Origin: Klebsormidium nitens
Lineage: Eukaryota; Plantae; Klebsormidiophyceae
Direction of reading: 5' to 3'
NCBI GenBank assembly: GCA_000708835.1
Contig: DF237071.1
Span: forward strand, 62,001-126,000
DNA: 64,000 nucleotides
Below the pieces are notes generated by a model. That model was not told the DNA's origin and made no database searches. It saw only the letters and a list, made by a program, of their open reading frames with translations. Both the position numbers and the translations under genes were made by a program. Positions 582 through 37,268 of the stretch are shown piece after piece (the first letter of the stretch is position 1; every line of letters starts with the position of its first letter).

Positions 582-5591
<5,010 letters not shown>

Positions 5592-6645
5592 TGCGACGGC
5601 CCCTCCGCAGCTCCTCTTGTGCTGCCTGGACGCGTGAAAAGGACCTTCTCTCTCGCTGAGGAGAGACGTCAAGCTCCAGTCTGGCGTTTCGAAGCTTCGG
5701 CGTCGATTGACGTACGAAGCACATCGACTCAACAAGTGAACGGGCGTCTTGGAGCGGGAATCGACAGTGCGAGTATCGAAAGTGCCAATGCTAGAGCCGG
5801 GTTAGGGTCTGTAAAAGGGCAACCGGGTTCTGACCCAGAAATTAAACTCTAACCTCAGAACGAGCCAGCCGTCCGATATCAATGAGAACACATCTCAGCT
5901 GTTGGAACTTTTGACTAACCCAAACTGTCGAGCCTCGGTTAGGACCTGTTAAACCCAAGGTGAAAAGGTCACGACTAGCTAGCAACATGCAAGGCGATTC
6001 CCAGTCTGTTCCAGTCAGACTCGAAGACGAGCTGTTGATCACAGATCAGAGGCAAAGTTGGAGTCTTCAAGAAAGAATTTGAGTTCAATGGCATTGGAAG
6101 CTTTCTCGAAAAAGGTTGGAGGAATTTGACATCCACTGATGCAGGGCCCAGGCCAATGTTTGGATGTCTGTTGTAGCAAGGAAGCTGGACGATCCGATTG
6201 AAAGTCCTGGAAAAAAGGTTACCTGCGTAATCAGCAAAGTTTACAAACTTTTGATGTTTCAGCTGTTTTTACTACGGCGGCCCGTTGTTTCTGGTAAAGA
6301 AGTGGTACAGTGACGGCAAGGAGTTTCTTGGTGTCCCGCAGACACCAGCATTTGCTGAGAGCTCTGCACTGAAACATCGTAAACAGGGACAGGGGGCAAC
6401 TATCAAGCATTTGATCTAGCTCTATTGACCCTGAATCAGTCAAAATCATAGAAGCCTTTTGGATCATCATTTTCCCAACCATCAGATTTCTAAAAGACTT
6501 ATTGCTAAGAAAAGGTTGCGCTCTAGCTTTGGCATTGCAGCCAGCCATGCATGAGCAGAACGGAACAGCATTCCGACACTGACACTCAGCACTCATTGAT
6601 CCAGTTTGTTTGACAAGGCTTGCTGCAGCAGTGTCAATTGCAACA
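5592..6645. promoter_or_regulatory. Divergent RPL7A/PRMT4 promoter and 5' UTR interval
   Basis: The two start codons are about 1.05 kb apart, head to head. Pyrimidine tract CCTTTTC near 5640 on the minus strand (TOP-like) and telo-box-like GGTTAGGG near 5800. Transcription starts not determined. Confidence 0.4.
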
Positions 6646-9600
6646 ATGCAGGGCAATGGACCAGGCTCGTCTGAGCCATTTAGCTTCCCGTCAGTTTCAA
6701 TTTGCGAGCAGATTGTGACACAAGATGGGGATGTGCATTGGGGCCCTCCGCAGAGGGGCGAGCTACAGATTGCTCGGGACGCTTCGTTTGTCTTTGTGGA
6801 AGAGCAGCAGCGGCAGGGGCTCCTTAGGGGGTCGTTGGCAGACAACAATCTGCAGGTATGGCATTTTACCTTTGAAATACCATCTATGTTGCTCATCGTC
6901 CATTCTGCGTCTGCCGTTGAATTGGTTTCCCCTCTGATCAACGCAGGGAGCAATTCTTTTGATGGCGGCAGGATGCCGTAGATAAGCTTGTCACTTAACA
7001 TTTTCTGCTGAAGGTTCCTGTTTGTCTAGTTCCTCAACTGTCCAGCATTGAAGTTATAGAGACAAACACAACTATGGTGGTAGCATTCACCTGAAATGTT
7101 CCTCAGTCTAGCAGAAATGACTTTGGCATCACTTTCCCTTTTCTGCTTGCTTCATGACGTGTTAGGCCCAACACCCTCATGTAGGCTCTGATCGACTGAA
7201 GACATTCTCCAACTGGTGATCCAGGGCATCCAATGTGATAAAGTCTTGCAAAGTCCTTGCACCGACATGGTCACTCTCCGTGTTGCTAAATCAGGCTTTC
7301 CAAAGCCAGTTTTCAATCTCGAAAAAGACGCTTCTGCATGCAGGTCCTAAGAGCTGGGCCCACTCTCCAGATCTGGTCTATGCCTGCGGCTCAACAAGCC
7401 GAGGTAAAGTCAAAGAAAGCGATGCCTTTCCACTTCCTATTCTCTCTGTACTCACCATGGTTTGTGTGGTGGTGCCTAAAAAGATATAGATGCTGACTGT
7501 GCATGGGAAGGCTTTTAGAAGGTGACATCGATCGAGTGGTCCTGTCATTAAAAAGTTGACAGATTGATAAGTTGTGAAAGTGACAACTCAAAATGGTGAC
7601 TTTGAGAGGTGAAAATCTGGACTATTGAGGAAGTCTGGATCAGTGCACCACCTGCTGAAGGTCTGTTGTTGAAAATGAAGCAGGCCTAAGGCATGCCCTA
7701 AGCCGCTAGGGCGAAAGTGCATCGGTTGAAAGGATTGTGGTAAGCCAGGATCAATGTCGTATGTAATATTGAATACTATTTGATAAAAGCAAGCTGACCG
7801 TGGACTTCAGGCCAAGCGATGCTGTAAACCTTGTGTTGAGCACTTGGTATTTCTCAATTACAAACACATGAACCAAAAACAAGGACCAAGACTGTGGAGA
7901 GTCAAACTACCAGCTCTAATATCCAGCTTTTTTTGTCAAGTTCTAGGCTCAGGAAGTTTCTTACTTTAACAGGCCCGAACCATCCTCCTGCGATTGTCTT
8001 CCCAAGAAGCAAACGGGCGCCTTTGGACTCTAACACGTGAAGCGCAGCCAAAATCAGCTGGTGAGATTTGATAATGGACTTGTCACTTGCTTTTTTTAAG
8101 CACCCCTGGAATTGTCGCTGCACGCCAAAAGGATCAGTAAGAGTAGATGCTTGTTTCCTTGTCAGCATGTCCAGCTTCACCACTGCGAATGTGGGTTTAA
8201 ATTGATTAGAAGAAATATGATGCGCTCATTCCGGCGGTTTTACTCCGCAGAATCTGTTGCCTCCTTTGTGAAAGTTGCCATGCTGACCTTGCTTATGGCT
8301 CTTAGAAAAGGCCTCAGGATGATGATACGTTCTGCTGGTGTCCATTCACTCGAAGCGTCTCTGTGTTTCTAATATTGTCGAAGGTAAAGAAACGATTCTG
8401 TTTCATAGCGAACTGTGTCAATACATACGCTTTTGGTTGGTTGAGGGCTGTCTTATGTCTAGGCAGCGGCTTGTGCCTTCTTCATTGCTTTTTTTTCCCC
8501 CTGACCTAACTTCTGTCTCTTAATTTGTGAAGCCCGTCTTAGCTCGGTTTCTACCTGCGCTTTGTTAGTCTGTCACCATCAAACGTTTGACTACTAATAT
8601 CACTCTATGGTGCCTCCAGTGGCATTGGGCGTTTGAGGCAAGGGTCAATTGTGAGCCAGTGTTAGTCAGCTCCCAAATTTGTTCAATGTTGAGAAGCCTC
8701 AAAGGTCTAGGAGGGGCTGTCGTAATTGCATAGAGCTGGCGGAAATTTGTCTTTCTCCAATCTCTTGAAATGTCAAGCAACCAATTCCAACCTGTTTTCA
8801 GGGGATGCCAAGGCAGGGAGCGTGTTTGAGCAGAAGATCGAACAGGCATCGGCCAAGATGTACTTCCACTACTACGGCCAACTGGTGCATCAGCAGAACA
8901 TGCTGCAGGACTACGTGAGGACAGGTGGGTTCCGGGAATCTGACTTCGTGCTCCGTTCTTGCTGCACCACCTTTGACCTTTAGCAGGATTTCAGGATAGC
9001 CATTGATATTCCTCATCTGGGGTAGCTTTCGTTTATGAGAATAGATATTGCACCTACCAAGCAGAACATTTTGCAGAATTGTATAGGACAGGTGCGTTGC
9101 ATCATCGTGCTAGACTCAATCTCCTTCCCCCCTGCCGGATTAGATTCTGTTCTTCTCTGCTCACTCTAGTTTCTCTGCGGGCACTGAACTCGAGAACTGA
9201 GCGGACTTTAAAAGGAGAATTGTGGTGGAAGTGGGGTCAAAGACCCGAGTTCTTTTCCTCTTCATCTGCCCTCTCTCTATATGCAGGCACCTCACTACTG
9301 TAGAAGCGGGCGAAAAGAATGTTCTGTAGTTGACATGAGCGCAGAGAGCAGATTCGATTCCCGTTTCCCTGGCTTACCCTCTAATACCTCTGTTCCGCTC
9401 ACTCTTGTTTCCATTTTTGCAGGCACGTATTACGCCGCTGTTCTTGAGAACCGAGCGGACTTCGAGGGGAAGATTGTGGTGGACGTTGGAGCGGGAAGCG
9501 GGATCCTGTCGCTGTTTGCGGCGCAGGCCGGTGCCAAGAAAGTGTATGCAATCGAGGCGTCCGACATGGCGCAGTATGCGACGAGGCTGGCGGCAGGAAA

Positions 9601-12600
9601 CGGGGAGGTCGGGAGCAGGATCACGGTGAGGGTGCTTAATCCTGGTTCGTCTTACCTACGTGCTAGACAAATGCGAGGGCTCGTGCTTCAAAGTTAAGAC
9701 TGTCGATATATGATGCGGCTCGCTGCAAGGAACGGGGGCGCTGGGAGAAGGATATTGGTGAGGTTGTTCGATCTCCGACCGTCTTTTCTTTCAGTTTCAG
9801 AGAATCAAGGGTTCGCTTTAGGGTTGACAGTTTAGTATGTGAAGCAGCTGGCGGCGGGGAACACGTGAGTCGGGAGTAGGATTACGGTGAGGCTGTTAGA
9901 CGCTGGGATCGAATGTTCATTCTACTTCGTTTTCCGATTTCAATATTGTGTTGGATTGTGGCTACAGTTTTTTGTGTGGAATCTGCCATGGCTGCCCTGG
10001 GTGGGCGGCAAGGGGACTAAGCATCCAAGTAAGCAATCTGTTCCGACACACGCTGACAAACGGTTTCTTTCCGACACTAGCCTTCAAAGGGGTTAAGTTG
10101 GAACGTTTTCTGGGACTGGGCAAACAGCCGTATATGAGGCAACAAGATGGCAGGACAAAAAGGTTAGCTGAACTTGATCAAATGCTACTCTGCAGGTTGT
10201 GCACGGCAAGGTGGAGGAGGTGTCCATTCCGGAGCGCGCGGACGTGCTGATCAGCGAGCCGATGGGCACGCTGCTCATCAACGAACGCATGCTGGAAACG
10301 TACATCATTGCGCGTGACAAGTTCCTGCGGCCAGGGGGAAAGATGTTCCCGTCGCAGGGAAAGTGAGTGGCGTGACTGCCAAGAGGAACTTCTTAGCAAT
10401 GAGTTTTCTTGTAAAGGCCTGACGTCAGCGTACCAGCTTCCAACCGTCGTTCTTTTTTGCTGAAAGCCTTCGCCGTCTGGGATGAGGGACGTCGTCGGTT
10501 CTTAGAAAAGGGGAAAGACGTGGCTAGACACGCCCAAAGGAACCCACCGCAGCTTCGACTTGCAACCAGGACCATTTCTTCAGAGTCGATCTTCGTGGAG
10601 GTCAGCCGCGGAAGATCTCGGCAAAAAGGGGAGTCGTAGTCAGTAAAGTTCTTTATGCTGAGCCTTCGTTTCTGGTGTCCTATTGAGCACGGCTGATCGA
10701 AGCCCCTCGTCAGGCGATGGCCGACCCGGCGCTTTCTACCATTCCGGAAGTGTGTCTACGGCTCGATTTCGTTCGGGCTCCTTCATGCAGGAACCCTTCG
10801 CTTTCCCAATCGCCAGAAAATTCAACGTTGTTTGTTTATCAGTAGCCACGAGCTGACGCCTTGTCGTCCATTGATCAACTTCTGAAGCTCGTTTCCTCAA
10901 CTTGGCCTTTTCTCAGGATCTTGGTTCCGTCCTGTTCTTCGAGGAGGCGCTTCAGAGCTTACCATGATAGAACGCGGCCACATGATCAACATAGATTGTA
11001 GAGCTTTCTCCAATCCAGAGTGGTCAATGTGGGACGGAGAACATGTACGAAGTCTCTCTCAGGCTCGAGAATAAAATTCCGGCTTCGTCTTTCTCCCAGG
11101 ATCTTCATGGCTCCCTTCGCCGACGAAACGCTGTACACGGAGATCGCCAACAAGGCGCTCTTCTGGCAACAGCAGAGCTACTGCGGCGTCGACCTCTCGC
11201 CGCTGTACGGACAGGCCTTCTCGGGTTACTTCTCGCAGGTGAGAGATCCGTTCGTTTGATGGTCGAGCTAACAATCCTAAGCTGGTAATAATCCCAACTG
11301 TCTGTGAACAATTGCCAAGGCCACATATGTCCTTGTTTTTCACCTGGGATCCGCTTGTGGCTGAAAACAAGACGTGCAATTCTGCAAGGTGGCCCTTTGC
11401 TTGGCCACTTTGATTTGAGCCATCTGCATATGATTTGGAGTCTCGTGCATGTTTTGGGTTGGCAACAGGCAGAACGGCTTTATCCAAGGGCTCTCTCATG
11501 ATTGTGCGTGCCCGCTGCCTGAAGCTGTACGTTCGAGGTCTCGGGTTCAGAAAGCTCATCGGGGCCTATTGCTAGATCGTGCATTGGTTGTTTGAAACAG
11601 GAAGTACCACTTTGCACCCATATCTACCAACTAAAATAGCATCGCTGGGTTGGTTCTTAGTGTATCCAATGTTCTCACACATTGAATTTCACAAAGACGG
11701 CCCTAAAACATAATCTGTTATTTGACAACCCAAACCCCAGTAAACCCTCGAGCCTTGACGCTAACCCTAATTTTATCAAGCCTAAAAAGAAACCTCAAAA
11801 CCCTGCAAGCTGTGCCCTGAGTTTGCTAGAACCATTTCGCAGCCGGTGGTGGACGCGTTCGACCCGCGGCTTTTGGTGGCGCCGTCGCAGACCCACGTGA
11901 TCGACTTCATGACTGCCAAGGAGGCGGACCTGTACGAGATCGACATCCCGCTGAGCTTCAAGGCTGCCATTGCGACGCGTGTGCACGGGCTCGCGTGCTG
12001 GTTCGACGTGCTCTTTGACGGAAGGTAGGTCGTTCAAACGTGGTCCTTGGATCGCTTCCAGAGCACCCCAAGCCAAGCTTACAATGCACCCTTGCCTCAC
12101 CGCCTGTCTGCTGGTTTGACAATCATAGACGTCGTCGCTCTTATGGTTGTCGGCGGTCTTCCGCCGCTTTCTCAACCGTTTGGTGGGCTGGATCAACCGT
12201 TTGGTGGGCTGAATCTGACACTGCTCTTCACTTGAGTCCGTGTTCATTTTTCCTCCGAAGCCGCATACGAGCGCCGTGGCTTATCCGTCCTTTCCGGTTT
12301 CCAGCAACGTCCTGCGATGGCTTTCGCCTGCCCCCTTCAGCCGCCGACCCACTGGTGTCAGCTACATTAATGACTCATCTTTCGACCCATAGCTTATCCT
12401 CTTCCCAGTAGCTTATATCTCGGAGTCCAACTCAGCGCTTATGCTCGCACATTTTCCGTCCAGCAACGTCCTCCGGTGGCTCTCGACCGCGCCGGGCCAA
12501 CCGACGACTCACTGGTACCAGCTTCGTTGCGTGCTCAGCCAGCCTCTGTACGTCCTAGGGGGACAGCAAATCTCCGGTAAGCCTAAGAACCCTAACACTG

Positions 12601-14760: not shown

Positions 14761-16209
14761 CAGATGGAACTTTAGATGAACAACGACTTTAATGCTTGTG
14801 CGAGTGTCGTCAGATTGTGTAAGAAGGTAGACTCAGCGTTTGCCAATGTCTTTGCTTGGTTGTCGGGGTATGTGCTATTTCTGTTGTTGCAAATATCAAA
14901 GTTAGAGAAACACATTTGCAGAGCCGTTCTGAACGCCAGGACCACAAGTGTCTGAAGTCTGACTGAATTCAATGCGCCTCTGGAGATTAATCAGTATGCA
15001 TGCCATCCAAATTGCACAGGCGCACTGCATATATGATTGTCTTTTGTGAGGCCGGGCGGCTGCTTAAGTTACCCAGCGAATGCTCACCGTTGAGTGCCTT
15101 CAAGCATGCGAATGAGACAGATTGCCAAAGTGTTGCATCTCGCAGGCTGTCCCCTGAGTATCGGACATGCTGGGGACAGATTAAGCCTGCCCTCGATCCG
15201 TTATGCTCTCAAAAAATTATATGTCCGAATCTTGAATGTCAGGATATAAGTGAGATTGAACCGTTCAATGTTAACTTGAAGTTCAACCGACTCAATGCCA
15301 GGCAACCGTCCAGGTTTCAATCGGCGAATAATGCTCAGCGCACCCGGCCGCCATCGCGTACACAAAATCAAGCCATGCGCCATGCATGATGCATCTGGCA
15401 CCTCTTATCCAACATCGATCTGGCATCACATGCACTGTATAAAGCAATGATTATTCTTCGATCGTTACACATGGCATACGACCATACATTCCACCGCCGC
15501 CACGACGTACCTATCACGAATTGACTCAGTGACATGTTTGTGCATGCCGGCCGCTGAGCAGCTGTCACTCAAGCGCTCAATCAGAGGCTCTTAATTAAGT
15601 CAGCTGATCGTCAGTGTCACTATCTTACTAAAGTTGTCACGCACATGATATTCGATCTTGTACGCGAGATCGGTGCAGTGCAGTCAATGCACAGGCTATG
15701 TTGGGTCCGATTGCTATACGCATCATCGATCACTCATTCAAACCTTCTGAGACAAGCATGGTTCCGACCATGCCATGCATCCGGCCAACGGCTTGGCACG
15801 TACCGCAGAAGGATACTAAAGTAATGAACACTGATGTAGCAAAAAGTCCACAGAATCAATGGGCGCTAGCTTAGCAACCCTCTTGGATATCTCTCGATCA
15901 GCGTATACGTACGTACTGCCCAAGAAAGAAAGGGCTTACATCGGTCACTCGACCCACTACGGGGCTAAAGTCTAGCAACATCTGTCGGGCCGGAACGACA
16001 CCTTTCACTCGACAACCTCCACGGTGCTACAAGTCTAGCAACATCCGGGAACGACACCGCAACGGCTCTAGTGCGCAACGACTCTAATGCTGAGCAGGTT
16101 TTTCCCCAATACTTGATGGGGCCCAGTTATCAAAATGAAGTCGGCCCCTCCACCATCCTGAATTTCCAATTAGCCCACTAGGCTAAATCCTGCAGCCCAA
16201 CTGGCCTAG

Positions 16210-19200
16210 CTAATGCTGAGCAAAATTGTCCCAGTACTTGATGGGCCCCAGTACAACGGCGGACGACGGCGCTCCTCCGACGTTGAACGTCCGCAGGACC
16301 TCGAGCGTGTCCTGGTGGTACTCCTCGACCGCTGCCTTCTTGGGGATCATCACGAACAGCTGCAAGTCCACCGAAAGGACCCGAATCAGTTGCTAGCGAC
16401 GTAAAACCTTGGAAGTTGCAAACAACCGCTCCTTGCGATTAAAAAAACTCAGAGATAGCTAGTGATTAAAGGCGTTTGATTTCTTAACATCGTCGTCCGA
16501 CCGACATCTTGTCTGTTTTCTCTACATCTTGTGTGTTTCTCTACGATGTGAAAAGCACTACTGCCGGCGTGTTTGTTTGTTGCAAGCACTGGGAAAAACA
16601 GTCATTCGAAAGAAAGCTGAGGATCTGCATGCAAAAAACCGGTTGAAGGCTCAGAGCTTGCACGACAAAACTCAAGCACTCGATTCGGTCTGAGTCAGCG
16701 GAGCTTACCCTCCCCAGCCCGACTTGCACCGCGGGCCAGACGTCATCAGAAGTATCGAACGCCGTCGAAAGATCGCCGCTCAGAACGCCGGTCACGCGAC
16801 GCATTTCGGCCCCCGTTCTGGGGTTCAGAGTGATCAGGGTCCCGTTCTCGCCCGCCGTTAGCACAGCCAGCAGATCGCCCGCCGGATCAAGAACTGCACG
16901 AGGAAACAAAGCGCATTGTCTTCAGTTCCAGCATCACCCGAGTTCGAGCCAATCTCGTTAGCTAGCGCGTGCGCAGTGGGAGAAAGCGGTTTGTCCGAAG
17001 CTGGTCCGAAACCGGTTTGAATGTAAAACACCGGTCCGAGCCTGGTCCGAACGCTTCGGAAACCGTTCAAGACCTGTCCGACGTCGCCATGAACCGCACA
17101 GCAGTTTGGAGCGCGTATGAACCAGGTTCGGACAAAGAGTATTCTGCAGATTGGTTTCTTGAAAAACTTCTCAGCTCTTACTGCTAGCTTCTCATGAAGG
17201 TATCAACCAGTTACAACGACCTCAGACACGTGCAAAACCTTGGATGAGCTCCGGAACGTCACATTGTGGATATAAAGTGTTGTTTTTCTAGGCACGTGTC
17301 TCCGCTTAGGACACGTAGAAGCGCGCTACGTTCAGCTAAGGACGCGCCAGACTCGGGACGGAATGTGTCGCCGGGACTGAATCGAGACGCGAAGGAAGTC
17401 CTTTAACGTTTTCTTTTGCTTTTGAGTCCAAAAGCTATGAATCCTTTCATGCATGCAGACGTCCCCGTGCAACGTTAGCGCGCTTGCGTGGAAAGGGGAG
17501 AGGCCGTTCATCTCTACAGTGGCTGACGTTGAATGCTGATATTGTCCACCTGCGTTGATGACTTCCCCCTCGGTCGTTGCATTGACCACAAGTCGAGCCT
17601 CCCCAGCCGCTGGATCAAAGAAGTGGATCCCGATCGAGAGGTAGTCAGGAGGCGCGCCGTAAGAGACCCCAAAGAAGGTCGAGAACTTGCCGCTACCAAT
17701 GACCTCGTAAGCGCGGACGTTCAGAGGCAAGGGGATGCTCTTGTGGGTGAAGTTGTCCGGGGCTGCATTCAAAAGGAGGCAGCCATCAGCTTTTGAATGT
17801 GGAACGTCGTCTGCAATATCTACACGGAACGGCCTGTGTGTTGCGTATCGTGTCACTTTTGATAATTGTATGGAGCTCACAGGCAATGGAGGAAAATCAT
17901 AGAACTGCCAAGGTGATGAGCGGTATATCTGGTAAGGATTAAGCTTTCGATTGAAGAGATCCTCTAACAAAGCATCAATCACTCTGCACCCGTAAGTACT
18001 ACCCGTATCCCGGCCAAACTTAACCCCCGGCGTCCCACTCGATTCTCATTGGGCTTTGTCACTAAAGCGATCTAAATGGATATTCTCGGGTGATGATAAT
18101 TTGGAACGAACTCCAACTGCAATTCCAAGACAAGGCGCGAGCGTGTTAAGTACCTGTGTATGATATCACGAGTACCGAGCCGTTGCAGGCGAAAAGAGCA
18201 TCTTTGCCGTTGGTCGCAGTTCCATGAAGTTCGGGGCAAGCAGTTCTGGAGCGGTTGTACACAACGGTCCCGTCCGTGTTGTATACCTGCATATGAGCGG
18301 ATTGTCAATCAGCCTGGTTTTGCAGTGCTAGAATTTGATTCGATAGAAGCACTACAAAGCTTTCCTCCACTTTAAAATGAGCAGACTTTGCCAAGCAAGT
18401 CCTAAAAGCATGTGCGTTGTCAATTTCTAGTCTTCAATCGACTGGGCGTTTTTCAATAGTCTTCAATCGACTGGGAGTTTTCAATCTGAATCGCAACTTC
18501 CAAGAAGCTGCCAGTTTACTCGTCAACCGACCACATAAGGAGGTCTTTCATTCAGCAGCTGGATGACTCTCATTTGAATTCCCACCGAAAAAGACAGGTT
18601 GCTAAACTGATTTTGGAGCGGGGGAAAAGATGACTTATGCACTTATTCTTCCACTCGAACTGACAAGTTGCTGGGACCATTTAGAAGCGGGAGCGCAGCT
18701 GTAATCCAGCGAGGGAAAATTTGAGACTCACCTGAACGCCTTGAGCCAAGGCGACTTCCTCGTCGTTAATGGCAGACTGGTTAACGTAACCAATGGCGAA
18801 AAAGTCTTCTGACAGGGGCGCAACGAACCCGTGCTGTCGGTCGCTTTTGATGAACGTGGGCGAGTAGGAGGCGTTGCCAAGCTGCCTCTCGTCAATGATG
18901 CAAGCTCGCCCCTCTGGAAACGTGCACAGAGAAAGGCCGTCTGTCAGGGCTTTTAGAATAGGGAGAATGCTTGAAGTGCTGGGGTCCCAAATGGAAAAGG
19001 TAGACAGCTGTTAAGACGAGAACAAGGAGACGTGAACAGAGACGGCAGGCTGTCAGGACGCAGAAAAGGGTGACTGCCTGAGGTGATGCGGCTCCAAATG
19101 AAAAAGGTAGAAAGCTTTTAAGTAAGCACTTCCAAAGAGATAAAGGAAAGGTGCACAGAGAAAGGCCGTCTGCCAGAAATCGTAGAATAGGAAGTTCGCC

Positions 19201-21299
19201 TGAATTGATCCGGCTCCAAACGGAAAGGTGAAACAACTGTAGAGAGACTTCCAAAGGAACAAGGAAACTTGCACAAAGAAAGGCCGTCTGTCAGGACGTA
19301 GGAAAGGGGGATCAACCAAAGTGAAGCGGCTCCGAACAAACCAGTGAAACAGTTGTTCAGAGACTTCCAAAGAAATAATAATACGGGCACAGAGAAAGGC
19401 CGTCTGTCAGGATTTGTGGGAAAGGGCGATCGCCTGAATTGATGCGGCTCCAAAAACAAACGTTGAAACGGCTCTAAAGGGACTTCGAAGAGAACAAGGA
19501 AACGGGGCACAGAGCAAGGCCGTCTGTCAGGACTTGTGGGAGAGGGCGACTGCCTGAATTCATGCCGCTCCAAACAAGAACGTTAAAACAAGTACTGAGG
19601 GAATTCCAAAGAGAACAAGGAACGTGCACAGAGAAAGGCCGTCTGTCAGGATTTGTAGAACGTTTTTAGGTTTGTCGCTTCAAACGGGAAAGTGACACAG
19701 CTGTTATGACACTTCCAAAGAGAACAAGGAACGAAACAACACCGCCGTTCTTTGAGCTGCGGTACACTGCAGGAAGTAGTCGCTCCTAACCAAACCTGAT
19801 TAAGGAGGCACTCAAATTGAGCAGTGTATCAGTCTGTTGTGTTCGAAGGGTCATTGACCCGTTGCTTAACCCGGCTCAGTTAGGTGTTGGTTTGCATTGC
19901 GACTGCTGAGCTAGGCTGCAAGACACGGTGAGCTTGTTTCTCACCTTCGTCAAAAAAGATTGCTGTGATAGGCCCAAGCGTGGCAAAGTTGCTTGGTGAC
20001 GTCACATCGAGGGCGAAGTCACTCAGACCCGGTGTCGCAGTCTGCTCGATGGACCATGCCCCTTGGTCAAAGCCTGACAAAAGGGAGCTGACGTCAGGTC
20101 TGTCAGGCCACGTCAGCTGATCAAGGTGATGCGCGTTCGAAAGACACAAGCGCAGCGGATCTTCATCCAAGATAACGAGAGACAGTGCGAAACAATGGCT
20201 ACTAAAGATGCGGGTAGTCGTCAGAAAGTTGCACCAGGGGTCCTATGTACTCAGCAATGCGGAAGGTTACTAACCTATCTCGTAGTTGCTGTCGTAGACT
20301 GACGTCAGGTTTCCGTCATACTGCAGGAAGATGGCGTAGCGACCGCTACTGGTGGTAAAGCCAGAAGCGTACGAGTCTGCCAGCTGGAGTGTGTCGTTGA
20401 CTGATCCACTCGCCAGGTCGAGGACTGTCACCTGCAATCAGAATTTTGGTGATGCTGTTTAAAGAGTAGATGAACTTCAGAGCAGAGCGTTGAGCTGAAA
20501 CTTGGCCGGAGGTTCTGCGCGCGCTGCTCGCGGGCACGGACCGCATCGTCCAGGAGATTGATAGCGTGGAGTACGGCCTGACGGACATTCAGAAGTACTA
20601 CGCCAGCACGGGGGCTATGAAGGCCGCCGCCGAGACGCTGCGCGACGGCAAGAAGGTGCGGCCGGCCGGACAGTGATATGGTTAGAATACGCATTGAGTC
20701 AGTTCGAGCCAGCGGCTACTGCCATGGGCAGTGCAAAATTTTGCCTTGATTATGCATTGTTGGATGAGATTTCCAGCTAGTGTTTATGTGTAGCAGGAGT
20801 CTACATGCATGAGAACTGTGAGTTTTACGTGAGGACAGTGTTCCCGGGTTGCAATCCAGGTTGAGGCAGGATTCAAACAAAGCGCAACACCTCTACAGGT
20901 TCAAATTTGAAAAACTAGTTTCACTTTCACGGCGTCGGAGTGTTTCCAAAAACCGCTGATTGAGTCAAATTGCTGAGATTTGACATTTAGCTGAACTAAT
21001 AATATTGCTGAAAGGAAAGTCAAAATCCCGCAACATCACTCATCGTCTTGTGCTTGCGGGCAAGGTCTTTAATGAGACCCATACAAGCCGTCAGGTCTGC
21101 AGCTTACCTGGCCCTGTGTTTCGCCATCAATGACAAGCAGGTAGCCCTGAATGCCTTCAGACGCAGGTCCGCCCAGGGCAAGGCTCGAGTTTGTCGCCTG
21201 CTGAAGAAGGACCCTAGCAACAGTGTTTCGCGGCAAGTAGGTCACAAAGATAAGGCAGACAAGTGCGGGAAGTGCGCGGAGCGCTATCTTCGAAGCCAT
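16210..21299 (-). CDS. Secreted beta-propeller protein, AztD (zinc metallochaperone)-like, 446 aa
   Basis: Exons 21108-21299, 20275-20431, 19945-20073, 18732-18913, 18154-18286, 17550-17762, 16709-16893, 16210-16359. All GT-AG, phases consistent, total 1341 nt. Signal peptide MASKIALRALPALVCLIFVTYL. Ordered motifs match my recollection of AztD: VTVLDLASG, SGRYA, IFFDE-G, QHGFVAP, GVQVYNTDG, CPELHG..FACNGSVLV, PAVQVGLGRLFV, GGAPSS, terminal His. The gene model is more secure than the family name. Confidence 0.8.
18915..19735. repeat. About 7 decayed tandem copies (110-120 bp) in intron 3 of the AztD-like gene
   Basis: Core ACAGAGAAAGGCCGTCTGTCAGG at about 18926, 19036, 19155, 19273, 19389, 19509 and 19628. 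On the gene strand the core reads CCTGACAGACGGCCTTTCTCTGT, i.e. the branch point and pyrimidine tract of the exon-4 acceptor. Confidence 0.9.
20506..20655 (+). pseudogene. Isolated 150-bp fragment of a magnesium chelatase subunit H (ChlH/BchH family) gene, antisense within intron 1 of the AztD-like gene
   Basis: Translates to PEVLRALLAGTDRIVQEIDSVEYGLTDIQKYYASTGAMKAAAETLRDGKK, matching the ChlH-family segment QEIDSVEYGLTDIQEYYA. It is GC3-rich and followed by a donor-like GTGCGG. No other ChlH exons were recognised in the window. Confidence 0.85.
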
Positions 21300-21900
21300 G
21301 GGCACTGCTCTTGCAAAACCCTTACTAGCTCTCCGCCGGAAAGTTTTGGGAGTTGAACCACGAGGGGTTGCAAAGAGATTCCTGGACTTCAAGAATCTGC
21401 TACAAGAATGAGCGGCGCCGGCCGTGCTATATGAAGCCGGGATATGTGCTGTAAGAAATCATACAGAAGACTGGCCCCAAGTTGTCTAAATAGCTTCTTA
21501 TGGACGGCTTCGGAATATTTTAGATTACTCAAAGGCAAACCTGCATAATTACCTTATCAGGAGTCTACCAACTCAAGCAGCGTTTGAGCGTTCGTGGGTC
21601 CGAGGGAAGAGCGGCCGCTGTTACCACGTTCTGAGCGACAAGTGAGTCAGTAATTCGGTTTGTCTGAGTACTCTCGGGTTTGAGTCGAGCCAGGTTTAGA
21701 TACAATCCTGGAACCGGGAGGACGCACCAAACAAAAGTCTTTGTAGATACAAACCTGCTCCGCTCCCATACCACCCTAGCTAACCCCAAAATCCAACCCC
21801 ATCCGCCGACCTCTGGCGTACATCCTCAACCTGGCCGTATCTCAACCGAAGCCTTCGTACTACCGTACTTGCTTCTGCGTCCTTTCACTGCCGCCCTGTG

Positions 21901-21910
21901 ATGTCGACAC
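21901..21910. promoter_or_regulatory. Perfect zinc-deficiency response element (ZDRE) consensus match ATGTCGACAC
   Basis: Matches RTGTCGACAY exactly, about 600 bp upstream of the AztD-like ATG. A partial TGTCGAC core occurs near 21978. Function is untested. Confidence 0.45.
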
Positions 21911-22415: not shown

Positions 22416-22750
22416 NNNNNNNNNNNNNNNNNNNNNNNNNNNNNNNNNNNNNNNNNNNNNNNNNNNNNNNNNNNNNNNNNNNNNNNNNNNNNNNNNNNNN
22501 NNNNNNNNNNNNNNNNNNNNNNNNNNNNNNNNNNNNNNNNNNNNNNNNNNNNNNNNNNNNNNNNNNNNNNNNNNNNNNNNNNNNNNNNNNNNNNNNNNNN
22601 NNNNNNNNNNNNNNNNNNNNNNNNNNNNNNNNNNNNNNNNNNNNNNNNNNNNNNNNNNNNNNNNNNNNNNNNNNNNNNNNNNNNNNNNNNNNNNNNNNNN
22701 NNNNNNNNNNNNNNNNNNNNNNNNNNNNNNNNNNNNNNNNNNNNNNNNNN
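22416..22750. other. Assembly gap (335 N) with very GC-rich, hairpin-prone flanks
   Basis: Direct observation of the N run. Confidence 0.99.
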
Positions 22751-31500: not shown

Positions 31501-34500
31501 ATCACCTTGTCATCTGCAAACGGCTCTTTGTGAAAGTAAGGAATTACTTATTGCCGAGAAATGACTGTCGAGGTCTGACGCCCGTCTCTCTCTCGAGCTC
31601 CACTAGCAGTCGCAGATCCACGGGAAATAGCGTGCAAGATTTTGAGTGCGTTCAGATGTCAAAAACGTCCCGAGCTTTCTACGAAACACGGGGTGACCAA
31701 ATACAGGCCGCGCCCTTGCTGTTTGTCAACTGACGTTATTCAATTCAGCTTCGTGCACGAGTTCTTCGACTGGGGCCAGCGCTACTTCATCAATCTCTTG
31801 GCCGGCTCCATCTCCTGGATTTTCGGCCTCGCGCTCTGGATCACTTCCCTCGACTGGATCCGTCGCAAGTACTTTGAGGTAAGCGCAGGTGTTCCACCCC
31901 TGTTTACCAAATATCCCGAAATCTGCCCTTGCGGCAAACACAATCACTCCTTTTGACGCGTCTGACCAAAACATTGCATTAGATTCTTAACTTTCAACAG
32001 CCAGACTCGTGGCATGTACTTGATTTAGATATCCAATTGTGTTCAAGTCGCGCTGGATGTATTTTGTGCACCGGAGATTGAGACTGCTCTTCACCTGCCA
32101 GGGGTGTCAATTTTTGACTTCTTTCATGGCTGATATGCAGCTCTTTTACAAAACACATATCGTCGGATTCGTGGGCTTAGTGGTTTTCGCCCAGATGCAC
32201 TACTACTGGATGTGGACCTGCTGGCTCCCAGGTAAGCAAGCTTGCCCAGAGTTAGGACGGAAACGGAAACGGAAACGGAAACGGAAACGGAAACGGAAAC
32301 GGAAACGGAAGCGGAAGCGGAAGAGGAAGCGGAAGCGGGAACGGAAAGGATTGTAACTCTCTAGAAACAAGCTAGCTGTGCAAGCTTAAGTAGCTTGACG
32401 TCCTTTGGCTGACTACCCAATCATGACGTCAAACACTTCAAAAGGAAGTGTGTCTGCCATGTCTTGTACCAGACCTTATCAAAAGAGCAAAATCACGGTC
32501 GACGTTGTCTTCTGGGTTCCTACAATCCTCGAGACTCAGAAGCAACTCTCAAATCCAGTGCACAAAATGCTCTCTTGCAGGTCTGCTCCTCTACGCGGCC
32601 GACCTGGCGGTCCGGCTTTGCCAGATCCAGAACACGTCGACAGCGATCGCCAAGGGCGTCTGTGAGGAGGACTCAGTCGTCATGATCAAGCTGTCGGTTG
32701 ACAAGGTAAGCTGCCGGGTTAGACACAACCACTTCGCTAAAAAAACAGTGGTGAGAAACGCGCTCTTTTAGCTGCTAGAACAGCTTCATCAAGTAAAGTC
32801 GATAGGGATGGGTCGTCTACTACCTGATGAAGAAGTTTGCACGTTCCCTTCGTCGTTCTGAAATATATCTGTAAAACTCACGCTCGTCTGCCACTCCCCT
32901 TTCATTTCTCATCATCAAAAACCTGAGACAGTGGCCACCAGGGGAAATTTTCACTTCTTTTGACGAATATCTGACCGATGCTGCTTGCCCCACTTTTCTC
33001 ACTGCTTGAGTACCCTAAACACAATTTCACTTGCGCACATCCTTTTGGCTTCTTGCGGCGTCCTTCGCTGCGAAGCACCCCATACTTACTGAGCCGCTAT
33101 TCTAGGGCCCACACTTTAATTGCTTACGTACGTGACTCTGACGTAAAGTTACACGTGGTCCAATCAGATATGGGTCTGTCTGTGCCTGCAGAACATAAAG
33201 CTGGCCCCACTCCAAGACATCTTTGTGGCCTTCCCCGACATCAGTCGCTGGCAGTACCACCCGTTCAGCATCGCGAAGGCCGAAACCTCGTCCGCTTGTC
33301 CGATGGAGGGCAGCAGTAAGGAGATACTGCTGAGCATGAAGCGTTACGGAAAGTGGACGTCGGTGAGTGCGTCCGAATGCGCGCGCGCACGAGGAGAGCG
33401 GTGCTGTTTCTCCTCCACAGGCTGTGACCGGGTTTATTCCTGACGTTTGAAAAGACGTGCCTTGTAGTGGAGATTTCGCTTGACCAGACACCTTTTCTCG
33501 TCCGAGTCTGACTTAGGACCAGCCTTTGCCGCTGTCTAGAATCTCCAGCACTGGGTTTGACACATTGCTTGGACTGCCAGTGGGCCCCCATGCGCCGTTC
33601 CGTCGTGATTTTGGTCAAACCTCTTCGTCGCGGTCAAAGCTCTGCGTCTCAGTCAGTCTTTCTCTTAGGCGGATGAAAGGTGCCATTTCTTCATTTTCCT
33701 TCTTCCAGGAAGTCATTGACCGCTTAAAGAACGGAGAGGTACTCGCGGTGCGGCTCAGCGGCCCGTTCGGAGGCGAGACCTCCTTCCAGTGGCGCAAATA
33801 CGACGTCGTCCACCTCTACGCTGGCGGAATCGGGGTGAGAACCTACGACCAAATTCTCCTTTTCCCTTCAGTATGTATGTCCTTGAGGCCTCATTGGATA
33901 ACGCCCACAGGATTTGATTCCACTACGTACATTCGAAAGTTCTAGAACCGTACCAGATGCTCTGTGTTTATGCTTGGCGGACTTCGGAGAGGAAGGACTC
34001 CAACTCGGTGTCACGTCAGCGCAAAGGACTCATCTATCTCATGCGCGCGATTTTTATTTTAAGACTTCAATCTTGTGCCACCAAGTTAGCGCGAAGGAAA
34101 TTTGGGATTGCACAGGAAGCCGTGGGTCTATCTACAGCTTTCAGGTACTTCCACAGAGCTGCAGTATGTTGTTCAAACTTCATCCGGGCGCCCAGATTTC
34201 ATCTCTGATATTGCACCTCTCCACAGGTCGTCCCGCTCATCTCCCTCCTGCAAGACATGCTGTCCGCGCGCGCGGCTGGTTCGCCGGATGACGTACCTGA
34301 GCGGGTGGTCCTGTACTGGTCGGCCCGCCACAAGGCGGAGTTCCACCTCCTAACCAAGGACATGGCTGCTGCAATACAGTAAGAGCCTTTCGAGACTTGA
34401 TCTGAGGCGTATGTAATTTGGTAAGGAGTCCAGGAATTATCGTAGAAGCTTTGTCCTCACCGTTCAATTGGGCTTTCCTTCTTTGCTTGTCGGATCCATT

Positions 34501-37268
34501 TGCAGTCAAGATGGATGTCGCGTTACCACACCCGCTTTTAGAACTTAAAGCATATTGAATCTGGTAGAGAATCGACCGTTTATCTCTCTAAAGGCTTGTC
34601 TGTCATGCTTTATCCGGCTGCCTTCTCTGCTTGTCAGATCCGTTTGCAGTCCCAGCCTAGCTCCACGCTGATCCCAGTGGCCTCGCATCAAAACACCTTT
34701 GGAAGTGTTTTTCAACCTTTAGAAGTGGTTTTCAACCTTTTGAAGTGTTTTTCAACTTTTGAAAAAGGCAAAGAGGAAGTATCTTATCTTATTCGTCCAC
34801 GTGTCCTTCAGGGAGGGTTGGCTCACCATCCGTCTGTTCTACACCGGCAACGAGTCGAAGGAACAGACGGCCAAGCCAAGCTTCAAAAGCTCCAAGGTCG
34901 ACTTCGACATGGGTTCTGTCTTAAACGAGAGGAACGGTGTCGATGTCGGAAACTTCAATAGCGCCCCGGCTGAAGGCCCGCGCGCTGACGTCAAGCTTCC
35001 GGGAGCATCCAGCTTCTTTTGGGATTACGCCAGGTAAAATTTTGACACAGCCCTTTGACTCGCATAAAATAAGGGTTTGGCGAATTTGATGCAATCTGCA
35101 AGTGAATTTTGCTTCTGAAGCCCACAATTTGCTTGGACCGCGCTGCACAGGATTTGGAAAGTTGGTTTGTAAGGTGGATTAGGCTGGCCTGGATGGGTTA
35201 AGATGTTTTTCGTGTAGGGTCCCAGGGTGGGTTAACGTGTTTCTCCTGTAGGGTCCCAACATTGACGGTAGAACCGTTCACACACACGAGACGAATTGCA
35301 CGCAGCATCAAAAGTTTGACATGGCTAACCGTGGTCATCATGGCTAACCCTGGTCATTACGGCTAACCCTGATCAACTCTCGACTCTACAGGCCGATCCA
35401 GCCCAAGTCCTTCAACGAGCTCGAGGCGCTCCTCGTCATCCTGACGACGTGGGTCGGCGGCTGGTGTGGACTCGTCCTCTGCCAGAGCTTCTTTGCGGAG
35501 TATGTGGAGACCTTCTACACGGAGTCGAAGTACTGGAAGGTAAAAGCAAACGACGTTTGCATTTGCAAGCGAAGAAGTGACCAGAAACGCTTATTGAGAG
35601 ATGGTACGCGTCGCTAGATTTTGTACCACTGTGAAAAAAAAAAACCAAGTTTCTCAACGTAGTACTTCTGGTTTCGCTTCTAGGGATAAAGGAGCTGTGA
35701 ATCTCAACAAAGCTCGCTGATTCGCATTGCTGTCGTGGTTTCTGCAGTTGACTCGGGTCTTCTGAACGTGATTCCTAGTAGCTCTTTCTACCTTCTCTGA
35801 GCCCTTTTGTTTTCCCAACTGAACAGTGATCCAGATGAAGATCCCGATCTCGTCGAAAGCCACTTCTGCAAGTGATGCAAGTACTTATGCGAATACTTAT
35901 GCGATGGTGAAAGAACCATCCGTTCTATTTATGCAGGCGGGTCTATTTTACACAGTTCTGCTCTCCGTCATGTCAATCGGGCTGCCAGTGGCTGTGGTCC
36001 TTTTCCCCAGGCACCTCTACAGGTCAGAAATGCACCAAGTTCTGAGTACCTCGACTGACATTCAAATCTCAAGACGGAATGGACTGCGTTTATCAATCTC
36101 GATTGGGTCACGGTGAGAGGTACCTCAATTCAAACCATGTCTCGCCCGGTCTAACCATTGGGCCTGTGTCTGGAGTTACAAGACGAGTCCAGAATTATCA
36201 GTGGACGGTCCGGGAGGCTGTCCGAAACATGTCTGATTACTGTCATTCTGCGCCCGACCTGTGCGGTACGTTCCTGTCTGTTTCAGTCTGACTCAGCCCG
36301 GGGTTCGAAGCGCTCTTCGAGCGAGGTTCAGGACACGTGACCTCTTTCCTGCAGGTATTTGCGCTACAGAAGGGAAGACGTCATCCAAGCGTCACAGCTG
36401 GCGTCCGCTGAGGACGTGTACGAGAGCCCCGACCACCCGTCCGTCGTAAGTGTGCACCTTGGGGCTCAGAAATTGCGCGCGCGCGAGCAGATCGAGCAAG
36501 CTCGACATGTAGAATGGATCAAATAGACTTAGAGCCGTGCAAAGTATTGGCTGTACATATATAGTAAAGGCACACTGACAGGAAAAGCTGGAGAACAGAA
36601 ACGTGCAAATAACGATTCTGCTCTTCTCGAGCCATCCCAGTTGGTTCTGGACGTATTTGACTGCCGTGCCAATTTATTTCTCGTTCACCATTTTTCTTCT
36701 TTTGTTGCCTTGTTGTTGCAGTCTGCCACGAGCGTCAGCTTCAATGAGCTGGGCCTGGAGGTCAACGTCGAGCAGGGGCGCCCCGACCTCAAGAGTGCCC
36801 TCGAGAGCATCGTCACAAATGAGAACGCTTCGATGAGAGTCGCCGTTTGCTGCGCCGGTACTGACTCAAACAGCTCGTTGAAGCTGTCTATACCGTTGCA
36901 TTTTCTCTTTCTACTCCCGCTCTGTGTATGAGAGCGACATGACTGTTCTGAAATGACAATTGGCAATGAATCTTACATCCAACATTTGTTGAGGTCATCA
37001 AAGCGAATCCCCAAGAATGAAGTTGAGTTACAGGAACAGGTCGCAGCCTCTCTGTCTCGAGCGCATACATTTGAGTCGAAGAAACTGGCGCCTAGACCTG
37101 ACCTGGCAGGTAATTTCTTGATTCATGATTCGTGTTTGAGAATCTCGTCTTTGTTCTGCTGCAGGCCCCGAAGTAATGATGAACAACTGCTCGAACCTGG
37201 TGTCTCAACTCAACGGCAATGATAAGGGAGTGTATCTTCAGTATCATCGCCTTGCCTACCAGCTGTAA
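28519..37268 (+). CDS. FRO: Ferric/cupric chelate reductase (FRO family flavocytochrome), about 805 aa
   Basis: Exons 28519-28733, 29393-29585, 29936-30098, 30582-30636, 30846-30971, 31372-31455, 31749-31878, 32141-32231, 32581-32705, 33192-33362, 33709-33834, 34227-34378, 34812-35033, 35392-35539, 35937-36022, 36355-36445, 36722-36857, 37165-37268. Phases are consistent, total 2418 nt. Heme-ligand helices RYHRWLGH..AHAL and YKTH..QMH, FAD motif HPFS, GPFG, NADPH motif AGGIG, GRPDL..CAGP. No EF-hand N-terminus was seen, so not RBOH. Confidence 0.93.
32257..32346. repeat. (ACGGAA)n / (GCGGAA)n hexamer microsatellite in FRO intron 8
   Basis: 9 perfect ACGGAA units followed by 6 variant units. 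Confidence 0.97.

Follow-up and report, generated by a model that had tools for sequence, protein, structure and literature searches.

An expressed, intron-bearing gene of the alga Klebsormidium nitens encodes an AztD-type propeller with largely degenerate zinc sites and probable bacterial descent

AztD has been described from bacteria only, where it hands zinc directly to the binding protein of an ABC transporter, and a gene of this kind in a photosynthetic eukaryote raises the question of how it came to be there and what its product can still do. An AztD-like gene lies on the minus strand at positions 16210-21299 of the window analyzed here, a stretch of 64,000 nucleotides of the Klebsormidium nitens genome (contig DF237071.1, positions 62,001 to 126,000). 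A first-pass annotation, made from the letters of the window, had described it as an intron-containing gene, probably acquired from bacteria, that gained glycosylation sites and kept one of the two metal sites of AztD. The observation of the gene is confirmed below, whereas the single-site inference fails because it assumed a mistaken make-up of the AztD sites. Taking all the evidence together, we consider it reasonably probable that the locus encodes a transcribed algal propeller of the AztD type that is secreted, descends from bacteria and has lost the classical zinc hand-over.

To establish the gene itself, we rebuilt its model from the raw sequence. It consists of eight exons with a coding sequence of 1341 nt for a protein of 446 amino acids (aa), the same structure as first annotated. 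All seven introns show GT..AG ends, only one in-frame donor in exon 6 yields the 446-aa product, and the stop-free stretches around the exons reach 237 aa at most. For a check of splicing, Logan contigs of four public runs (three organism labels, four studies) were aligned to positions 16000-21500. The seven splice joints in the contigs of these runs are exactly the modelled boundaries, all of them CT..AC on the plus strand, and all eight exons are joined within single contigs of 1743 and 1922 nt. RNA-like runs have high contig word-depths at the gene, and the transcript, as covered by RNA-derived contigs, extends past 16000 on its 3' side and to at least 21384-21500 on its 5' side. Intron 6 is retained in low-depth contigs (16868-17579), and one contig ceases to follow the genome at 21480, where its 27 deviating letters may represent an alternative 5' leader or a chimera.

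Few relatives of the gene were found. An exhaustive phmmer search with exon 6 against 1.84 billion cluster representatives recovered one true relative, an open reading frame (ORF) fragment of 118 aa on a JGI metagenome contig, L001; the other exon 6 matches, P0002 and P0003, are unrelated Cul7/caspase and Sushi-repeat proteins. Similarly, an exon 5 profile searched against a collection of 5.8 billion proteins found three fragments only, located on L001 and on two further contigs, L123 and L124. L001 and L123 were obtained from JGI sample 3300060284, and L124 from Logan SRR14092359. The homologue on L001 is a protein of 456 aa with 51% identity to the window protein and is likewise encoded by eight exons; L123 is about 90% identical to L001, and L124 is 95-100% identical. 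All intron phases are equal between L001 and the window gene, and exons 2, 3, 4, 5, 7 and 8 have identical lengths. Because the seven intron positions are common to the algal copies, the introns must predate the split of these copies. Outside the AztD-like gene, no synteny was found between L001 and the window, and a search of metagenome contigs with exon 7 gave no related locus. A Planctomycetia locus (L002, genome contigs) was discarded as spurious, because the match lies in a different frame from the HEAT/PQQ-propeller gene at that place. On L123, where the gene occupies about 4487-10284, a Ty3/gypsy-type retroelement with chromodomain, reverse transcriptase and integrase lies a few kb downstream.

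How closely these algal proteins are related to AztD was examined at two levels: Pfam, NCBIfam, PDB and the protein collections were searched with single exons, and full-length comparisons were made locally against bacterial sequences fetched for this study. None of the eight exons matches Pfam, even at E up to 10. In NCBIfam, the sole match is that of exon 5 to AztD (19.1 bits, E = 4.5e-4, profile positions 160-190), and L001 matches the same family with exon 5 (E = 2.4e-6) and exon 3 (E = 0.048) at colinear profile positions. A two-sequence profile of exon 5 has Citrobacter koseri AztD (6cmk/6n01) as its best PDB match (E = 0.0025), with CPELHG...FAC of the algal alignment opposite CPGLHG...SC at 6cmk residues 212-237. 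Nothing was found in PDB with the single sequences of exons 4 and 5, with exon 3 of L001, or with an exon 8 profile, and an exon 4 profile gave no matches other than ribosomal protein L34 and a designed Kelch propeller, both of which we took as chance. Membership in the generic WD40, PQQ or YVTN propellers was rejected, with no Pfam match and only weak generic propeller clusters in an exon 7 feature search (scores of at most 0.83).

Bacterial AztD genes for the full-length comparisons were collected from metagenome contigs, which were scanned with a back-translation of the motif C-P-[G/E/D]-L-H-G-[S/T]-A-x-x-G, and the best 120 loci were listed. In about 25 of these best 120, an intronless gene can be aligned with the algal proteins across aa 48-435 (tblastn). 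These bacterial genes score 409-445 bits on NCBIfam AztD (NF038015; cut-off 400 bits), and their relatives bear the name "zinc metallochaperone AztD" in NCBI and UniRef. One of the bacterial proteins, L054, matches PDB 6cmk_B over all 421 residues (953 bits; 310 bits to 6ck1, the P. denitrificans AztD), and its residues 101, 104, 106, 126, 169, 212, 216, 229 and 405 are those published for the C. koseri protein, CkAztD. With a local hidden Markov model (HMM) built from 139 bacterial AztD proteins, the window protein scores 62.6 bits (E = 1.3e-15 at Z = 1e6) in one domain over aa 46-435 and the L001 protein 91.3 bits, and 500 shuffles of the window protein reach a maximum of 5.3 bits. Aligning the algal pair with the bacterial alignment by hhalign gives a probability of 98.7% (E = 2e-16, 358 columns), and the identity between the window protein and bacterial AztD is about 25%. 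Judged from these alignments, the window protein is securely homologous to AztD along the entire propeller, and from this homology an eight-bladed beta-propeller fold can be expected for it. The AztD-like identity noticed in the first-pass annotation is thus upheld by tblastn, by the local HMM and by hhalign. The window protein does not, by its score, belong to AztD at the family level, since the bacterial members score 643 bits or more on the same HMM and the protein falls far short of their score range. Several bacterial loci (L088:2122-3951, L082, L009, L031 and L069) encode fusions of about 600 aa in which a full AztD domain (435 bits) is followed by a C-terminal zinc-binding domain of the ZinT/AdcA type, and such fusions (Pfam PF09223) are many among the protein matches.

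Does the algal propeller keep the zinc sites of AztD? In the P. denitrificans protein, PdAztD, site 1 is formed in the pore by His124, His167 and His218, and site 2, on an extension, by His99, His102, Asp104 and the C-terminal His; site 2 is the sole site competent for transfer to AztC, and a disulfide connects Cys214 and Cys231 (PMC6689063). We mapped these residues with the numbering anchored on L054, and MAFFT and hhalign gave concordant results (Table 1). The three site-1 His are at least 95% conserved in AztD.

Table 1. Counterparts of the PdAztD metal ligands and disulfide in the algal proteins; the L001 column holds equally for L123 and L124.
PdAztD residue	Role	Window protein	L001
His124	Site 1	Asn145	His152
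His167	Site 1	His187 (QHG)	His194
His218	Site 1	His241 (CPELHG)	His248
His99	Site 2	Asp119	Glu126
Gly100		Gln120	Gly127
His102	Site 2	Ala122	His129
Asp104	Site 2	Ser124	His131
C-terminal His	Site 2	His446	Terminal His
Cys214-Cys231	Disulfide	Cys237-Cys254	Kept

The window protein keeps two of the three ligands of site 1 and one of the four of site 2, so that four of the seven side-chain ligands are replaced. By this residue map, the zinc sites of the window copy are largely degenerate. The disulfide is retained in position, with Cys237 and Cys254 opposite Cys212 and Cys229 of 6cmk and at the 17-residue spacing of AztD. All four replaced ligands lie in exon 3, which holds five of the ligand positions. 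Exon 3 is also the least conserved part between the window gene and L001 (26% identity; exon 1 has 44%, and exons 2 and 4-8 have 53-66%), whereas it is 93-98% conserved within the L001 group. In L001, L123 and L124, His is kept at site-1 and site-2 positions, and both metal sites look largely intact in these sequences. The C-terminal tail of the algal copies is six residues longer than in bacteria and strongly conserved, ending in YWDNFAQH in the window protein and YWDEFYQH in L001.

The first-pass annotation had correctly noticed the three His, in QHG (187), in CPELHG (241) and at the C-terminus (446), as well as the segments NYEIGFDQG and SPSNFATLG that replace the AztD sequence in exons 2 and 3. 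What it had concluded from the three His does not hold. It took one AztD site to be made of the HHG, CPxLHG and terminal His, whereas the published structures assign the terminal His, with the HGDHxD hairpin, to site 2 and form site 1 from the three pore His (PMC6689063). Because the His of QHG, of CPELHG and of the terminus belong to two different AztD sites, they do not form one AztD site, and neither of the two sites is complete in the window protein.

Features expected of a protein of the secretory pathway are also evident. A hydrophobic segment of 12 residues (aa 9-20) resembles a signal peptide, and no membrane-spanning-like segment follows it. The window protein bears 10 N-X-S/T sequons and L001 bears 9, five of which are at aligned positions, compared with a mean of 0.37 and a maximum of 3 in the 139 bacterial AztD proteins; the gain of glycosylation sites, like the signal-like segment and the count of 10, had been recognized before. 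His makes up 1.3% of the window protein vs 4.4% of bacterial AztD. On these features the window protein appears adapted to the secretory pathway, and it is probably secreted. Right after the predicted signal segment, all algal copies have a motif R-[VL]-L-L-Q (the RVLLQ of the first-pass annotation at aa 29-33 of the window protein; aa 37-41 in L001) that has no bacterial counterpart.

If AztD is a bacterial protein, where did the algal gene come from? The AztD paper lists the family from bacterial phyla only, and no eukaryotic AztD is described in the literature that we searched. We built a maximum-likelihood tree with the bacterial AztD proteins, a sample biased by the motif scan and the listing of the best 120 loci. 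The algal pair falls outside every sampled AztD of alpha- and gamma-proteobacteria, at the end of a very long branch (about 10 substitutions per site). A transfer from bacteria is quite likely, with a donor clade that the tree does not name; of the horizontal transfer proposed at first, the bacterial origin thus stays plausible, and the phylogeny meant to support it joins the algal pair to none of the sampled clades.

Under the explanation that we favor, a bacterial aztD-like gene would have entered the algal lineage before its split from the metagenome relatives, and would afterwards have acquired its seven introns, a signal peptide of eukaryotic type and sites for glycosylation, with identity falling to about 25%. 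Site 2 would have been dismantled as His, Gly, His and Asp gave way to Asp119, Gln120, Ala122 and Ser124, and the pore site would have been reduced to His187 and His241, with Asn145 instead of the third His and with the disulfide and the C-terminal tail remaining. The outcome would be a nuclear gene of a photosynthetic eukaryote for a soluble, N-glycosylated protein of the secretory pathway built on an AztD-type beta-propeller. The classical role of AztD, zinc hand-over to an ABC binding protein, was presumably lost, and a lower-affinity or re-wired metal-binding propeller outside the cell, in the wall or in the vacuole, would be the more probable role. Our best guess for the present function is accordingly phrased broadly, as an extracellular metal-binding or re-purposed propeller.

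Several observations weigh against this explanation. The conserved C-terminal tail with its terminal His hints at a metal or partner function that persists. The placement in the family comes from local comparisons with bacterial sequences obtained by a motif-biased scan, and the tree identifies no donor, so that a very old ancestor or a propeller ancestor other than AztD is possible. Moreover, the eukaryote-wide negatives are weak: distribution among eukaryotes was tested through single exons only (exon 6 and the exon 5 profile), in a protein collection that does not contain the window protein itself and whose algal coverage is incomplete.

One alternative is that zinc is still delivered. A working chaperone could use one site of His187, His241 and His446 and pass zinc to a eukaryotic acceptor such as a ZIP-type transporter. 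The two site-1 His and the terminal His are indeed conserved in all algal copies, the six-residue-longer conserved tail might reach the pore, and a site-2 extension does enter the pore of another chain in the crystal of CkAztD (PMC6689063). However, the terminal His is a site-2 and not a pore residue in the solved AztD structures, the third pore ligand is Asn in the window protein, the transfer-site hairpin is gone, and there is no known acceptor. The palindrome upstream of the gene that resembles the plant zinc-deficiency element (ZDRE) would suit such a role, but it is weak evidence because 17 of 100 shuffles also yield one match and because the element is absent upstream of L001 in the promoter examined. 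We regard a working chaperone of this kind as quite unlikely. It is very unlikely, in our judgment, that the longer tail bends back and brings His446 into the pore to complete a site beside His187 and His241. Such a re-wired single metal site would make the protein a zinc scavenger, secreted by a streptophyte alga, that delivers zinc to a membrane transporter under deficiency, possibly under ZDRE/F-bZIP control, and the first eukaryotic member of the AztD superfamily. At the opposite end, the propeller may have a metal-independent function, such as binding of wall carbohydrate or protein, with the His as structural leftovers. The replacement of four of seven side-chain ligands, the low His content, and the divergence of exon 3 from a relative whose own group conserves it, in an ORF that is otherwise intact and expressed, would all fit, yet the protein still has His187, His241, the terminal His and the disulfide, and neither the exon Pfam searches nor the exon 7 feature search indicated an alternative ligand or partner. 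This possibility appears unlikely to us.

The history of the gene allows other explanations too. It could be an ancient gene, eukaryotic or of the plastid era, that almost all lineages have lost, or could have arrived via another eukaryote, in either case without a transfer into the algal lineage. The very deep divergence from the sampled bacterial AztD, with no donor clade, is compatible with this, and the seven shared intron positions imply that the gene is not recent; but exon 6 found no full-length eukaryotic relative in the 1.84 billion representatives and the family is described from bacteria only, which leaves such a history rather improbable. Alternatively, the window copy could be a duplicate in decay whose transcription continues, with the functional gene elsewhere in the genome. 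This would account for ligands that are lost in the window copy and kept in its relatives. It is nevertheless highly improbable: the frame is unbroken over eight exons, splicing is exact and word-depths in RNA-like runs are high, and the five conserved sequons and the conserved C-terminus argue for selection.

The features of the locus are given in Table 2. Neither ZnuA nor ABC domains were found among about 30 window ORFs in a Pfam scan that was not exhaustive, consistent with the absence of an AztC/ABC partner noted at first; operon logic, as in the aztABC link, does not apply to a eukaryote in any case. Two weak, colinear Pfam matches on the plus strand, Ferric_reduct (31642-31956, E = 4.4e-4) and NAD_binding_6 (36641-36931, E = 4.6e-3), suggest a gene of the ferric-reductase/NADPH-oxidase type on the opposite strand, at a distance of about 10 kb from the AztD-like gene's 5' end. 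An assembly gap of 335 N at 22416-22750, about 1.1 kb upstream of the gene, leaves the promoter-distal region incomplete. Within the gene, intron 1 contains on the plus strand (20500-20673) an open fragment of 58 aa that resembles CobN/Mg-chelatase H in its C-terminal part (Pfam PF02514, E = 9e-9) and that we read as a duplicated gene fragment. RNA-derived contigs with five base differences from it and unlike flanks show that the parent gene that is expressed resides elsewhere. Intron 3 contains a tandem array at 19018-19658, with a unit of 116-120 bp in about 5.4 copies and 74% matches.

Table 2. Positions of the exons, transcript ends and promoter element of the AztD-like gene in the window.
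Feature	Position	Strand	Content
Exon 1	21108-21299	-	aa 1-64; start codon, signal-like hydrophobic aa 9-20, RVLLQ, first propeller strand
Exon 2	20275-20431	-	aa 65-117
Exon 3	19945-20073	-	aa 117-160; equivalent of the AztD site-2 hairpin and strand with the first site-1 His position
Exon 4	18732-18913	-	aa 160-220; RQHGF, His187
Exon 5	18154-18286	-	aa 221-265; CPELHG...FAC, Cys237, His241, Cys254
Exon 6	17550-17762	-	aa 265-336
Exon 7	16709-16893	-	aa 336-397; highest conservation between algal copies (66%)
Exon 8	16210-16359	-	aa 398-446 and stop; tail ...YWDNFAQH, terminal His446
5' untranslated region	21300-21500	-	RNA-derived contigs to at least 21384-21500
3' untranslated region	16000-16209	-	contigs continue below 16000
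ZDRE-like palindrome (plant zinc-deficiency element consensus)	21901-21910		single match, about 600 bp upstream of ATG

Among known systems, fungal Pra1/Aspf2 is a secreted zinc scavenger that returns extracellular zinc to the membrane transporter Zrt1. It may serve as a functional analogy for the window protein and nothing closer, as fold and family are unrelated, and it differs in that no transporter partner was found next to the AztD-like gene. Bacterial AztD (NF038015; 6CK1 of Paracoccus denitrificans, 6CMK/6N01 of Citrobacter koseri) can be aligned colinearly with the window protein along about 390 residues of its eight-bladed propeller. The two have in common the pore-site His of CPxLHG and xHG and the C-terminal His, and the export of AztD by an N-terminal signal is also predicted for the algal protein. 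In contrast, the motifs YSMDGHW, DPRPR and LPTRRVHF, invariant in bacterial AztD, are not kept in the window protein, and its gene has seven spliceosomal introns, 10 sequons and a longer C-terminal tail and lacks an aztABC operon. An expressed, intron-bearing and glycosylation-adapted relative of AztD in an alga near the base of land plants would thus represent a propeller taken over by a eukaryote without the bacterial partner, and a clean, RNA-supported example of the gain of introns and sequons after a probable transfer from a bacterium to an alga. The proteins of L001, L123 and L124 resemble the window copy in the signal peptide, the R-x-L-L-Q motif, the five sequon positions and the ...YWD-x-F-x-QH end, and differ from it in their site-2 hairpin, which reads EGDHWH, and in the first pore ligand, which lies in PTH. 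With most ligands lost in the window copy and kept in these relatives, the algal proteins offer a natural experiment on a fold that has been detached from AztC.

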